A stretch of 52,682 nt of DNA, the filler included, from Bipalium vagum (Eukaryota), in assembly GCA_037834085.1 (NCBI GenBank). It is 2 parts of 2 records of this genome, joined end to end, with 100 filler letters (N's around TTAATTAATTAA, not from the genome) between each part and the next. Parts side by side here need not be neighbours in the genome. Positions count along the whole stretch, not along the records: positions 23,124 to 52,682 come from JBBMKC010023554.1; 1 more part is not named here. The stretch is one strand, 5' to 3'. Numbering within the stretch: position 1 is the first letter of the stretch; every line of letters starts with the position of its first letter. Below, one piece after another: positions 34,326 to 38,656 of this stretch. Below the pieces are notes generated by a model. It was not told the origin of the DNA and did not search any database. It worked only from the letters and a program-made list of their open reading frames with translations. The position numbers and the translations under genes were made by a program.

Positions 34326-36692
34326 TCAGCTTTGCTCCAAGTCTGCGGCAGTGAGTGGAATGTCGCAGACGTCGGTTGATGTTGGCATTGTGGCCTTGAT
34401 GTGAGAGCTGATGTGCGAGGGCAAATTTTTTCGGGCAATCGCTTGGCCACAAATGCATCGGTACATAGAGTCCGGAGTGTGTTTGATTTGGTGATTATTG
34501 AGAAGGTGGGTGTCGAACCCACAGGCCTTGCCGTTATTAAAAGTGTATTTATTGTTACAATAGTTACACGTTAGGGAGTTGTAGGCTTTGAAAGTTGCTA
34601 TTGTTTCTGTATTGTCAATTGCTCCTGCGAAGAAATTAATGGCATTTAAATCCATGGAGCCATTACAAGATTCCGCTATGTCTTCCATGTTGATTGTTGG
34701 TTGAGATATCGTTTCATTTAATTCACTTTCAGAATCAAGGTCTGAGAGTGAGTCACAGCCGGGATTGGTAGCGTAAACATCGTGTGGTGTTGCGACAGGT
34801 GCATTGATGGTTTTGAGTGTTGTTTGGATTAGCGGCCGGGCGTTGTTTGAGGATGATTTTCTGGAAGAGGCGACTGATATAATAGATATATCATCGTCAG
34901 AGTTATTTTCATTGAATTGGGTTATCATTGTTTTTCGGCGTTTAAGAGGTTTTCTGGTGACGTGCGGGGATGTTTCGATGGTGTTCGTTTGCATAGTCTG
35001 GGTGCCGAAATCCCGCGTTTCAATCATAGTTTGTGTTTCAACCGTGGATCTGAATATCGGTGGAGGGGGAATGATATCATCATCATCATCATCATCATTT
35101 TTGTCATTGTTTTCTTCCGGTATTGATTCATCAATGACAATGATATCATCCTCTTCCGCTGGTGGAGGTGGAAGATAGTCTTCGTCAATGGAACAAGTCG
35201 GTTCGGCGTCGAGATCGACTTCCATCAATTGGGTTTCCGGCTCTATGATCAATTCTTGAGATGTTTCATTGATCGTTTCGAGAGATTTTATTGGTGTTGT
35301 TTTTTCGTCAGGATTGATGGTAGGCTTGGCAGGATTTTCGTGATTTTTGGTGGAGATTGATTTTTCGGGCGGAGCAAACCCGAAACCTATGATTCCTCTT
35401 TTTTCCATGTCCGGGTTGTACCGGTAATCCACGAGGAGAGGCATATTGCGACGATTTACCTTGATTTCCCGGTACGTCGCCCGGAACATGTTCGATTTTT
35501 GTCCATGTATTGGACGCCAGCCAGCGAAGATCCATCTTTTCTGTCCAATCAGATCTGGCCTTGGACAGTTTTCCCGGTTGTATTTTGGGAAATTGTAATT
35601 GGGAGCCGTTTTTGAGTTATTCGGCCTATGTGTTGGCTCCTTTATGGCATTTTCAGTTGATGGAGTTTCGTTAATTGGTGGATTTTGTTGTTTGATGTTT
35701 GGCATTTTTTCATTTAGGACTTTTTCGGTTGGCTTGGTCTTCTTGTTTTGAGTATTCTGATTCTGGTCTTTGTTAGATTTCATTTTTTCACTTCGTGGCT
35801 TTTGAGGATAGTTTTGCTTACGATTTTGCCCTTTGCTTTGGTTGACTGGCGGCTTCTTCTGCCAGTTTTTCTTCTTTCTATTCACGACGGTCCATCCCTC
35901 TTCGCCTGTGACCGTCACTTTCCTATCCCCGTTGGTGGCCTCGATGGTAAGGCTGGGGCCCTTATACCTATTCTCCGGGATCTTAACTTTTTCTTTAAAC
36001 GCTACTTTCTCGCTCTGCTTAGCGCCTTCTTCTTTGTCTCGCTTAAGCTCATTTCTTAAGTTCTCGATCATCCCTAATAAGTCTTGGATGGTGGCCGATT
36101 TTGAGTGACTGTTGGGTTTTTTTGAGGAATTTTTTGGGCCTGAGTTCTTATTGGCGCCATTATTTTTGCCAGTAGGGGTCGCAGTTGGCCGTGGTTGTTG
36201 GATGGTGGCCCCTACTGGTTCAATTGGGACTAACTCATAGAGCCGCCCATCGGATCCCCTAACAGTCTTGGTTAGCACTTCACAGTACGATGGGGTCAAC
36301 TTATCCTGAACGTAGCATCTAAAGTCTTTATTTGCCCCATCGGCTATTATCTGACATTTAGCCCTGGTGACTAAGGATGCCATGTACAACGCATTATACG
36401 CATTGTGTAAATGTATTTTAGTATAATAAGCTATAATATTCATAAATATATAGGTAAATACTTTTATACATTGAGAGATGATAAAGTAAAATGGGCCAAT
36501 GGGAAGCTGGGGATAAGTGCCAGTTCCCATGGGGAGATTACTCTCCTTTTCACCCCCCCGCGCATAATTGAAACATGAAATAGGATTTTTCCCGAGGGTT
36601 TTGGTAAAAAGTGGAGTTAAATTCAGGGAAAAGACATTGAAAATATGGGGGTGAGGCCCTGGAGCAGATGGTTGGAGGTCAATGCAGACCAT
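34326..36692 (-). CDS. Copy A N-terminal protein (788 aa): basic/disordered region, conserved central domain and two C2H2-like fingers; ends at the UGA-CUAG
   Basis: Long ORF homologous to 41682-44225 and 47443-49551. Fingers CNYC..HLLNNH and CIC..HISSH. Strong protein-like conservation begins at MASLVTR (ATG 36383). Confidence 0.85.
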   Translation of the reverse strand: MVCIDLQPSAPGPHPHIFNVFSLNLTPLFTKTLGKNPISCFNYARGGEKESNLPMGTGTYPQLPIGPFYFIISQCIKVFTYIFMNIIAYYTKIHLHNAYNALYMASLVTRAKCQIIADGANKDFRCYVQDKLTPSYCEVLTKTVRGSDGRLYELVPIEPVGATIQQPRPTATPTGKNNGANKNSGPKNSSKKPNSHSKSATIQDLLGMIENLRNELKRDKEEGAKQSEKVAFKEKVKIPENRYKGPSLTIEATNGDRKVTVTGEEGWTVVNRKKKNWQKKPPVNQSKGQNRKQNYPQKPRSEKMKSNKDQNQNTQNKKTKPTEKVLNEKMPNIKQQNPPINETPSTENAIKEPTHRPNNSKTAPNYNFPKYNRENCPRPDLIGQKRWIFAGWRPIHGQKSNMFRATYREIKVNRRNMPLLVDYRYNPDMEKRGIIGFGFAPPEKSISTKNHENPAKPTINPDEKTTPIKSLETINETSQELIIEPETQLMEVDLDAEPTCSIDEDYLPPPPAEEDDIIVIDESIPEENNDKNDDDDDDDIIPPPPIFRSTVETQTMIETRDFGTQTMQTNTIETSPHVTRKPLKRRKTMITQFNENNSDDDISIISVASSRKSSSNNARPLIQTTLKTINAPVATPHDVYATNPGCDSLSDLDSESELNETISQPTINMEDIAESCNGSMDLNAINFFAGAIDNTETIATFKAYNSLTCNYCNNKYTFNNGKACGFDTHLLNNHQIKHTPDSMYRCICGQAIARKNLPSHISSHIKATMPTSTDVCDIPLTAADLEQS

Positions 36693-36863
36693 CTGGTAAT
36701 TATAGTAATAAAAATTATATAATAGAGTATAAAAACTGCGAATGCGGCGGTCATTAATTGAAAGAGTTCTAAAAATTTTTGAAAATTTAGGCCCAGGAGT
36801 GTTAAAACAGACAATTTTTGAAATTTTAGAACTTTTGATGAGGCGGCGATCAATTTTAGGTGT

Positions 36864-38621
36864 TTAGTTTTTATAAGAGGGAATCGTCCAGCCTTTAAAA
36901 TGATGTAAAATAAGCCCTGGGCTAGGAGAAATGGAAATACAGTAGACAGGCAAAGATTGAAGAAAATTGTAATAAAACTTAGTTAGAAATTTAGTCAAAT
37001 TTCTAACTAAACTGGCAATTTTGGAATTAATGTAACTTTTTTCCTGAGCGACGGAAATAATTCGGGTTGGTCTTAAAAGAAAGTCCACCGTTGAAATTGT
37101 ACTAAATAGCACAATTCCGGGCTGCAGGATAACGGTGGACGTCTCAGTAATTAGTTTAAAAGGGAGTAATTTACCCAGAGATATTAAACATATTTGTTTA
37201 AGTATAAATTTGTAAATTTTTGAGACGTCATATCTCTGGGTAAAATTACTTGAAAAATTATTTAAAGTTATCGTATAATAGAGAAAAAAATTCTCTATTA
37301 TATAGAGTAAAAATTTCGGGTTAAAACTCAAGATTGAAAAAATGTAAATTTTAGTGTTTAAATAAAAAATTAAATATGCGTTGCCAGGCGCATATTCAAA
37401 ATGGTCAAAATGGCCAATATTTAGAGATAAATTTTTATAAATAAGACCGCACGCATTACAGTCTGATAATACATAAAGGATAATATAAAAATTGGGCTTC
37501 AATTTGGTTAAGAATTGACCATTTAAATATTTTACTATTTTATACTTAAGAGAATTAACAATTTTGGTGAAAACTTTTAAAAGGGCAGCATTTTTGGAAA
37601 CGAATTCATCATAGATGAATTCCTTGGTGCCAAATCTACTTATAATATTAATAAAATTAAATTGGGGGGCATTTAAATATGAAATTGTATCCAGAAATTG
37701 AAAATTTAGATTTTTTGACCAAAAATTAGTTGAAATACCTTCTGTTGACTTTCCACCTTCCAACTCGGCTTGCCCACGGCCGTTGGGACGACCGCAGGAC
37801 TCCCCAGACGCTTCCTTACAGGGAAGCCGGGGTGAGAAACTTTGATGGTCATAATTTGTCGAGCCATATCGACACTGGTGTGATTTGTGTCTCTTCAGGC
37901 GGTTTACCCACGGTTCCGCGAGTGGTACCGCGGATCTGAGCATAGCCTCGGATTCGTCTCGTCGAGGGCTTTTCAGTGATAGGTCGGGCAGTTGGATCCG
38001 ACCATTTTGAGCCATTTTGAAAAATTCGGTCAAGTTTGGAGTTTGAATTGTTTCGCCTTTCTTGCATAGGCGATCTTTGGAATGTCGTAGAACATTTTCT
38101 GGTAGTTGAAAAAGGACATTTGAGGTGTCAACAGAAAGATCTCGATGAGATCTGTATTGTGCTGTGACAATATCTGAGATCGGCTTTGAATTGGGGGAAT
38201 TGTGGCTGTTGGAAATTCCGCATATGGAAATGCGGCTGTGATGGCGGATTAATTGAAAGTCCTCTAGAGACTGCGGGTTTCGTCGGATCGGAGCCGTCAA
38301 TATATGGAATTGCTCGTCATTGGAAGGGGCACCCAATGGTACCTCGCTCGACACCATAGCTGGAGAAATGGTGGAGCTGATTTTCGGCATAGGGGCGCCA
38401 TCTTGGCATCCATCTTGGATGGCCGATCTTTTCCTTGAAATTGTACAAAACTGTAACGAAGATAAATAGTTACCAGTTTTTGTGCTGCGTAAACCCAAAG
38501 GGCAAACCGCAACACCAATTTTTTGCGCATAATTGAGATTTTGAGAAAAACATGGCGGCTGCCATGCCCGATTTCTCCCCGAATTCGAAGGCATAAGAGT
38601 ACTCGAATGATTGATTTGCAT
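36864..38621 (-). CDS. Copy A leader ORF (585 aa), in frame with the 788-aa ORF across a single TAA
   Basis: TAA at 36866-36864 is followed by 57 sense codons (TPKIDRRLIKSS..) that run into ATG 36692. Copy B has a sense codon at this position (HKNLKSKIDRR). Whether a functional protein is made is uncertain. Confidence 0.5.
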   Translation of the reverse strand: MQINHSSTLMPSNSGRNRAWQPPCFSQNLNYAQKIGVAVCPLGLRSTKTGNYLSSLQFCTISRKRSAIQDGCQDGAPMPKISSTISPAMVSSEVPLGAPSNDEQFHILTAPIRRNPQSLEDFQLIRHHSRISICGISNSHNSPNSKPISDIVTAQYRSHRDLSVDTSNVLFQLPENVLRHSKDRLCKKGETIQTPNLTEFFKMAQNGRIQLPDLSLKSPRRDESEAMLRSAVPLAEPWVNRLKRHKSHQCRYGSTNYDHQSFSPRLPCKEASGESCGRPNGRGQAELEGGKSTEGISTNFWSKNLNFQFLDTISYLNAPQFNFINIISRFGTKEFIYDEFVSKNAALLKVFTKIVNSLKYKIVKYLNGQFLTKLKPNFYIILYVLSDCNACGLIYKNLSLNIGHFDHFEYAPGNAYLIFYLNTKIYIFSILSFNPKFLLYIIENFFLYYTITLNNFSSNFTQRYDVSKIYKFILKQICLISLGKLLPFKLITETSTVILQPGIVLFSTISTVDFLLRPTRIISVAQEKSYINSKIASLVRNLTKFLTKFYYNFLQSLPVYCISISPSPGLILHHFKGWTIPSYKN

Positions 38622-38656
38622 TGGGAATTGATCAAAGGTTTCACAGAGAAGATCCG

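Follow-up and report, generated by a model that had tools for sequence, protein, structure and literature searches.

We analysed a stretch of 52,682 nucleotides (nt) of the Bipalium vagum genome (assembly GCA_037834085.1), called the window below, in which a retrotransposon inserted in a variant gene of the U2 small nuclear RNA (snRNA) is present in three copies, A, B and C. Ahead of its first conserved open reading frame (ORF1) the element carries a hairpin-rich leader of 2.2 kb, on which selection has removed stop codons and ignored amino acids. We consider it fairly probable that this stop-free leader is read through from the first AUG of the transcript, so that the proteins of the element are reached. 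The analysed piece comprises positions 23124-52682 (JBBMKC010023554.1), and the copies were found by self-comparison. All long ORFs of this piece are on the minus strand; the coordinates given in an earlier note on the same DNA were correct, yet every feature described there lies on the minus strand.

The three copies represent a U2-snRNA-gene-targeting, Utopia/NeSL-like retrotransposon of the type without long terminal repeats (non-LTR) and with a restriction-like endonuclease (RLE). A Pfam search identified a non-LTR-type reverse transcriptase (RT; RVT_1, E = 1.9e-30) and, upstream of it, a Ulp1-like protease (Peptidase_C48, 26.5-26.7 bits, with a cut-off of 20.7 bits), both in the ORF that follows the first ORF of copy C. 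The identification as an RLE element, already made in the earlier note, was corroborated by an ORF of 503 amino acids (39672-41183), in whose sequence CCHC and PD...D-x-K motifs are recognizable and which has a weak match to RmuC of the PD-(D/E)xK clan (E = 3.5e-4, under the Pfam cut-off). A word-index protein search with the ORF encoding the RT C-terminus and the RLE retrieved no homologues at E <= 1e-5, and a search of the ESM Atlas retrieved generic RT clusters only, which do not name the RT clade. For ORF1, with a length of about 700 codons, an exhaustive comparison with 1.84 billion representative proteins retrieved no homologue (E <= 0.001), and it belongs to no Pfam family. Copy A is internally deleted and lacks protease and RT; about 15 codons after the end of ORF1 its sequence jumps to the CCHC/RLE region. 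With its remaining part (33508-34328, minus strand) it resembles a non-autonomous derivative that has retained both ends.

From 38660 down to 34326, one frame of copy A is interrupted internally by a TAA only (codon 598 of 1444), in agreement with the earlier note, and the other two frames have 67 and 114 stops. For the 2280-nt leader of A, the one stop in frame 0 compares with 38.3 ± 5.3 stops in 300 dinucleotide shuffles. The genome (440 Mb in 272,664 contigs) yielded at least 48 matches to the leader. Identity to A is 65-92% for about 35 distinct genomic copies or fragments, and these contain 0-7 stops each in the leader frame and in the register of A, with one outlier of 15 stops (L026, 65% identical), while the longer leader copies have 30-58 stops in each of the other frames. 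A stop in the leader frame occurs in 48 alignment columns, 36 of which are private to one copy, whereas many copies have the stops of the other frames in common. In one copy that is 84% identical to A (L002) the entire leader of 785 codons is open, and the three frameshifting indels in the leader of copy B have a net sum of zero. The sequence of copy A, including the TAA, was confirmed by contigs from one sequencing run that contains the locus (a non-RNA run).

Stop depletion recurs in three other leader families. Counted from the AUG of U2, the loci L046, L053 and L052 have 0, 0 and 1 stops, respectively, versus about 25-28 in shuffles, and the L046 and L053 leaders, which are without similarity to A, are both open across all 501 available codons. 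The earlier note had additionally pointed to indels of whole codons. Its example, an indel of 21 nt (LTKLKPNF versus LTNFNILGFKLKPNF), is present, but multiples of three are not over-represented when all indels are counted (71 of 562 gaps). Whole-codon indels were consequently rejected as a general signal; many of the gaps of 1-2 nt are likely alignment noise or decay.

To characterize the selection on the encoded peptide, the ratios of non-synonymous to synonymous changes (dN/dS) were estimated by Nei-Gojobori counts on A, B and C, with ORF1 of the same copies as an internal control. For ORF1, the values are 0.18-0.28 and third-position changes are two-fold. For the AT-rich part of the leader, dN/dS is 0.71-1.19 and the counts for the three codon positions are flat, with no excess at third positions. 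The values are 0.57-0.86 for the GC-rich block and 0.67 for the 5′ module of A and C, and they are intermediate, 0.46-0.61, for the last 300 nt before ORF1. By dN/dS and third positions, the leader does not behave as a protein under purifying selection, and ORF1 does. Because ORF1 is constrained in the very same copies, the divergence of the leader arose in active lineages in which the amino acids of ORF1 mattered but, within the leader, only the absence of stops. The proposal of selection for RNA structure and translatability, as opposed to amino acid sequence, survived the dN/dS, stop-count and covariation tests, all of which had been set beforehand as possible refuters.

Structurally, the leader consists of local hairpins in a chain and of one domain with three hairpins. 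In the earlier note it had looked like a large structured RNA; the dense packing with hairpins was verified, while a single large fold is unsupported. For 801 nt of the AT-rich part of A, the minimum free energy is -171.6 kcal/mol, compared with -117.6 ± 7.3 kcal/mol in shuffles (z = -7.4). The leaders of L053 and L046 have z values of -5.1 and -3.7, and the GC-rich block and the 5′ module of A have values of -2.25 and -1.6, respectively. The AT-rich hairpins are real and conserved: stem columns are 91% identical, compared with 74% for unpaired columns, a value reached by none of 2000 random placements of the blocks, and 91% of the cells are paired in six hand-drawn AT-rich helices in a 12-copy alignment. 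Individual stems reported earlier were recovered as well, i.e. the 14-bp stem with the loops GACT, ACCT and GAGT (36979-37010, 44092-44123 and 50153-50184) and, in the three-way alignment, the TATAATAGAGAA, GAATTCAT and CAGATGG stems, the paired change between A and B in the AATTGTGCTA hairpin, and the paired arms 38508-38515/38482-38489 of A versus 51698-51705/51672-51679 of C. The latter arms of A lie in the GTGTTGCG/CGCAGCAC hairpin (38482-38515) of the A/C-type 5′ module.

Compensatory changes, which the earlier note had ascribed to most of the conserved blocks, differ between the two structured parts. In the AT-rich hairpins they are rare, and the note overstated them: 6 of 68 pairs are changed on both sides, a number reached by 54 of 500 shuffles. 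For a core of 106 nt within the GC-rich block, 24 sequences were compared, the structure being read from divergent copies and not from RNAalifold, whose fold of the block mis-paired hairpins 2 and 3 and was set aside. Here 94.9% of the cells pair and 10 of 26 pairs are changed on both sides, a result obtained in 0 of 500 shuffles and to be compared with 0-4 in slid controls. A covariance model located the core in two further families (L041 and L051), in which the stems of hairpins 2 and 3 are wholly different in sequence and nevertheless pair, the loops and joining strands being retained. The 106-nt core is a structured RNA domain whose pairs are held by compensatory change beyond controls. 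In the sole sequencing run containing the locus, word depth peaks at this core. Rfam searches detected no RNA family in the leader, ribozymes, tRNA-like RNAs and snRNAs included (E <= 1 for the whole piece, E <= 10 for the GC-rich block). Self-cleaving 5′ processing of the type of the hepatitis delta virus (HDV) was rejected, on account of the lack of an Rfam ribozyme match and of retrotransposed copies that retain U2 from position +1.

The junctions of the elements with U2 indicate where the frame begins. The 5′ flanks consist of nt 1-26, 1-27 or 1 to ~38-41 of a variant U2 (Rfam detects one such 5′ fragment at 41304-41265), and in four other loci U2 follows from nt ~41 directly after the 3′ ends of the elements. 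The insertion site in the U2 gene is fixed, with U2 on both flanks, which is the criterion of Utopia, with a published insertion site after U2 nt 38 (Kojima and Jurka 2015, PMC4640811). About 125 nt of conserved upstream sequence precede the U2 fragment of copy C. The two highest-scoring U2 genes in the genome (184 bits) are canonical, and the variant family scores 120 bits and has at least 88 5′ ends. Canonical U2 reads GCUAAGAUC where the variant reads GCUAUGAUC; a point change creates an AUG in stem-loop I of the variant, with a compensated stem, and this AUG is absent from canonical U2. In addition, GUAAGA replaces the branch-point-binding GUAGUA. From the 88 U2 5′ ends of the genome that match the variant, 30 loci were fetched, and 13 of these 30 ends start exactly at U2 +1 with unrelated sequence in front, which fits full-length cDNA copies of RNAs begun at U2 +1.

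The open frame of copy B starts at the ATG that forms nt 22-24 of its U2 fragment (45513-45515), and in copy C the AUG of U2 (51851-51853) is in the stop-depleted phase. Where a clear stop-depleted frame follows the U2 junction among the 30 loci, its phase is that of the U2 AUG in seven cases, i.e. B, C, L046, L048, L049, L052 and L053; L051 is one base off owing to an extra T in a T-run. The A/C-type leaders begin with a 5′ box that occupies exactly the position at which the 3′ flank of U2 follows the 3′ ends of other elements, and their first ATG, which is in the open phase, is conserved 30-36 nt after the box (n = 6). The leader of A contains 31 out-of-frame ATGs. With dozens of out-of-frame AUGs, a scanning ribosome cannot skip the leader, and thus any stop in it would cut off ORF1 and the enzymes.

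These results suggest the following mechanism. Transcription would start at U2 +1, and the first AUG, located in the variant-U2 5′ fragment, would open the frame in B-type elements, in C, and in at least two other leader families. The frame would be very long, with ~760 leader codons, ~700 codons of ORF1, a single TGA-CTAG, and then the Ulp1-like protease, the RT and the RLE. The leader would act as a translated spacer: if a long structured 5′ RNA is needed and translation begins at the first AUG, no stops can be tolerated. An open frame that is entered at the first AUG is a simpler reason for the lack of stops than the internal ribosome entry site (IRES), avoidance of nonsense-mediated decay, or ribonucleoprotein scaffold suggested in the earlier note. 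The frame is stop-free ahead of the structured core as well, which argues against an IRES as the cause of its openness. The most likely role of the 106-nt core is that of a platform to which proteins of the element bind, by analogy with the 5′ RNA of R2 (PMC12203849); a role as a signal for RNA stability or export is possible. Transcription start, first-AUG use, stop readthrough and hairpin roles are all deduced from the sequence.

At the other end of ORF1, copies A and C have the same TGA, followed by CTAG and by bases that are identical in both, and in copy C the frame continues unbroken past TGA-CTAG into protease and RT. CUAG after UGA is a readthrough-prone context. A single in-frame stop, the prone context and an open frame downstream are the sequence features of programmed readthrough, and the junction of this RLE non-LTR element is reminiscent of stop readthrough as in gag-pol. 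Stop-codon readthrough is used by gammaretroviruses at gag-pol, and cellular readthrough at UGA-CUAG is known as well; we know of no description of stop readthrough for RLE non-LTR elements. The likeness to the gammaretroviruses would lie in the single in-frame stop between an ORF of structural type and an enzyme ORF.

Several observations weigh against translation of the leader from the first AUG, or against a role of its hairpins as RNA. At its 5′ end copy A has no U2 AUG, and five A/C-type 5′ ends directly adjoin another element, at its A-rich or (AAATT)n 3′ end. A G-run at the border of leader and ORF1 has apparently 7-11 G in different copies; in about 6 of 15 copies it puts the two frames out of register, although each side remains open. 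A TATA-like 12-mer about 75 nt before ORF1 proper is invariant even at synonymous positions; together with the border ATG, which has a good context and occurs in A/B-like subfamilies, it could indicate initiation at an internal site. Conservation of the AT-rich stems is mainly due to the invariance of both arms and their covariation is weak, so that they may have a sequence-specific or DNA-level role. The double changes in the 106-nt core stem mostly from one divergent lineage (L041/L051) and from one C-G to U-A switch, and the control segment of A, taken from ORF1, also folds better than its shuffles (z = -2.9). The search of sequencing runs for the locus gave one match, to a non-RNA run, and transcription start and translation are inferred only.

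Three other explanations were considered. If the leader were an untranslated 5′ region (UTR), with ORF1 translated from its own start on an mRNA from an internal TATA-type promoter or via an IRES, the open frame would be a relic. The invariant TATA-like 12-mer ~75 nt before the good-context border ATG of A/B-like subfamilies and the highly structured, GC-rich core upstream speak for this explanation. A relic frame, however, would not last through 27-35% divergence with 0-3 stops per copy and 30-58 in the other frames; moreover, the open frame recurs in unrelated leader families and the border ATG is missing from C-like subfamilies. We regard an untranslated leader as quite improbable. Much the same holds for a fast-evolving N-terminal protein domain, disordered or membrane-like, to which the hairpins would be secondary. 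The strong maintenance of the frame and the dN/dS of 0.46-0.61 in the last ~300 nt before ORF1 are compatible with such a domain, but over ~1 kb dN/dS is 0.7-1.2 without a third-position excess while ORF1 of the same copies is constrained, the conserved blocks are paired hairpin arms and not peptide motifs, and the leader peptides are unrelated between families. The leader translations of A, B and C also gave no Pfam match, and a protein domain therefore appears very unlikely to explain the leader.

Translation of the leader might also be combined with palindromes that act as DNA, i.e. as an internal promoter or as sites for dimeric factors, or that are substrates of host small-RNA pathways. 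The near invariance of both arms of the AT-rich stems, their weak covariation, and the presence of variable loops on constant stems point in this direction. The divergent family, however, swaps whole stems of the GC-rich core while pairing and loops are kept, which is the signature of RNA pairing, and in several stems G-U replaces A-U or G-C, a pair that forms in RNA only. The joint constraint of pairing and of the absence of stops may in itself limit covariation, and an action of the palindromes as DNA or small-RNA substrates is in our view unlikely. Translation through the hairpin-rich leader from the first AUG is the explanation that we prefer over these three.

Transcription and translation of RLE elements in host RNA genes are, to our knowledge, known in detail for R2 only. 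The locus in B. vagum suggests another solution, in which the 5′ end of the host gene is kept, its AUG is used, and the structured 5′ RNA is made transparent to translation. R2 resides in the 28S rDNA and has an HDV-like ribozyme in its 5′ UTR and a "5′ RNA" at the start of its ORF; it frees itself with the ribozyme, and its translation is thought to be cap-independent (review, PMC12203849). R2 is co-transcribed with the host gene from the host promoter, as the present element would be, and both have a structured 5′ RNA that overlaps coding sequence, which binds the element's own protein in R2 and is proposed by analogy to do so here. In contrast to R2, no ribozyme family was matched and retrotransposed copies keep U2 nt 1-27, showing that the junction is not cleaved. 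In addition, the AUG apparently comes from the host fragment, and the structured stretch, which is presumably translated, is about ten times longer.

The element resembles Utopia, with which it shares an RT with a C-terminal zinc finger and an RLE, insertion near U2 nt 38, and the co-existence of several families in U2 genes. By RT, CCHC plus RLE, and U2 site it would be a Utopia element, a placement based on these three features. The Ulp1-like protease is shared with Utopia-1_TSP, a nematode family, and is also found in NeSL elements (PMC4640811). Differences from Utopia are the 2.2-kb hairpin-rich leader with its probable translation, the AUG apparently supplied by variant U2, the separate ORF1 joined by TGA-CTAG, and a further class of junctions close to U2 nt ~61. 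In the Utopia study, the words promoter, ORF and methionine are absent, and no promoter use, start codon or leader is described (PMC4640811). The protease links the element to NeSL as well as to Utopia-1_TSP, while its target is U2 and not the spliced-leader gene, in which NeSL-1 of nematodes inserts. We know of no NeSL leader of such a kind.

A more comprehensive scenario is possible, though doubtful. Several retrotransposon families would be launched from the variant-U2 gene family, whose promoter would provide the transcript and whose AUG would open a frame of ~2,600 codons; this frame would traverse the 2.2-kb structured RNA as a spacer devoid of meaning in its sequence, then ORF1, and would reach protease, RT and RLE by UGA-CUAG readthrough; polymerase slippage at the G-run would switch the frame, and the Ulp1-like protease would trim the leader peptide. 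Slippage, errors of assembly or a hot spot of mutation could each explain the variation of the G-run. In two copies (L003 and L005), long open frames are present on both sides of the G-run and are offset exactly there. Variation of its length at homologous places was seen in L003, L005, L007, L008, L012, L014 and L018.

The leader is an unusually clean natural case in which RNA pairing and the absence of stops act on one sequence while the peptide is unconstrained. Tools that distinguish coding from structural signals can be calibrated on a leader under these two constraints, and the 106-nt core, as a candidate recognition signal for the proteins of the element, may be of interest to the engineering of R2-like systems. 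The features of the locus are compiled in Table 1.

Table 1. Positions in the window of the three element copies, their leaders and ORFs, and the associated U2 fragments
Feature	Position	Strand	Remarks
Copy A	38660 down to ~33500	(-)	self-comparison
5′ box of A/C-type leaders	38642..38660	(-)	resembles variant-U2 nt ~41-60
First AUG after the A/C-type 5′ box	38619..38621	(-)	stop-free phase
Leader of copy A	36381..38660	(-)	760 codons in one frame, single private TAA
A/C-type 5′ module	38011..38641	(-)	replaced in B-type by a different module of ~390 nt
GC-rich conserved block	37731..38010	(-)	common to A-, B- and C-type leaders
106-nt three-hairpin core	37735..37840	(-)	in other leader families too, covarying
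AT-rich hairpin chain	36690..37730	(-)	main hairpins 37602-37623, 37272-37304, 37173-37241, 37085-37138, 36978-37011
In-frame TAA	36864..36866	(-)	only one of copy A; sense codons in B and C
G-run at leader/ORF1 border	36549..36563	(-)	7 G in A
12-nt TATA-like motif	36459..36470	(-)	identical in every aligned copy
Border hairpin and in-frame ATG	36378..36404	(-)	ATG in A/B-like subfamilies only
ORF1 proper	34329..36380	(-)	purifying selection, zinc-finger-like motifs at end
ORF1 stop TGA, then CTAG and conserved stretch, copy A	34316..34328	(-)	
CCHC and RLE remnant of copy A	33508..34121	(-)	
5′-truncated element	38661..41304	(-)	RT C-terminus, CCHC, RLE, 3′ UTR; behind variant-U2 nt 1-~38
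Copy B	45536 to ~41737	(-)	self-comparison
Variant-U2 nt 1-27, 5′ end of B	45510..45536	(-)	preceded by RT coding sequence of C, not by a U2 promoter
Leader of copy B	43400..45509	(-)	B-type 5′ module
Copy C	51874 to 45526	(-)	self-comparison
Variant-U2 nt 1-26 and conserved upstream region	51849..51999	(-)	directly 5′ of C
Leader of copy C	49552..51848	(-)	decayed through several frameshifts
TGA-CTAG stop between ORF1 and protease-RT frame, copy C	47433..47445	(-)	same frame
Ulp1-like protease and RT of C	45526..47442	(-)	broken off at B junction; Pfam

Some further observations concern the U2 junctions. The two kinds of U2, canonical and variant, were recognized from the loci L059, L061 and L062 and from the window at 41265-41429 and 51849-51999, and it is the variant in which the elements sit. 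In L043, L045, L058 and L053, variant U2 extends to nt ~60, where unrelated element sequence takes over; these junctions near nt ~61 make up a second class, which points to another insertion site or to other families. The U2 promoter is separated from copy A by the 5′-truncated RT-RLE copy. The A/C-type ends that abut other elements (38661-38700, L002, L014, L017 and L021) form head-to-tail arrays and are not single insertions.

Traces of other events were found next to copies B and C. A full-length U6 snRNA gene or copy (Rfam, 62 bits) on the plus strand at 41632-41736 adjoins the break-off of ORF1 of copy B. At 45537-45580 (minus strand), where the RT of C breaks before the U2 of B, a repeat of ~30 nt from the earlier protease-RT ORF (peptide THHLLLESI) is present and may be a trace of template switching. 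Lastly, a decayed ORF1 fragment of another copy is located upstream of the U2 promoter region of C, at 52262-52382 on the minus strand.

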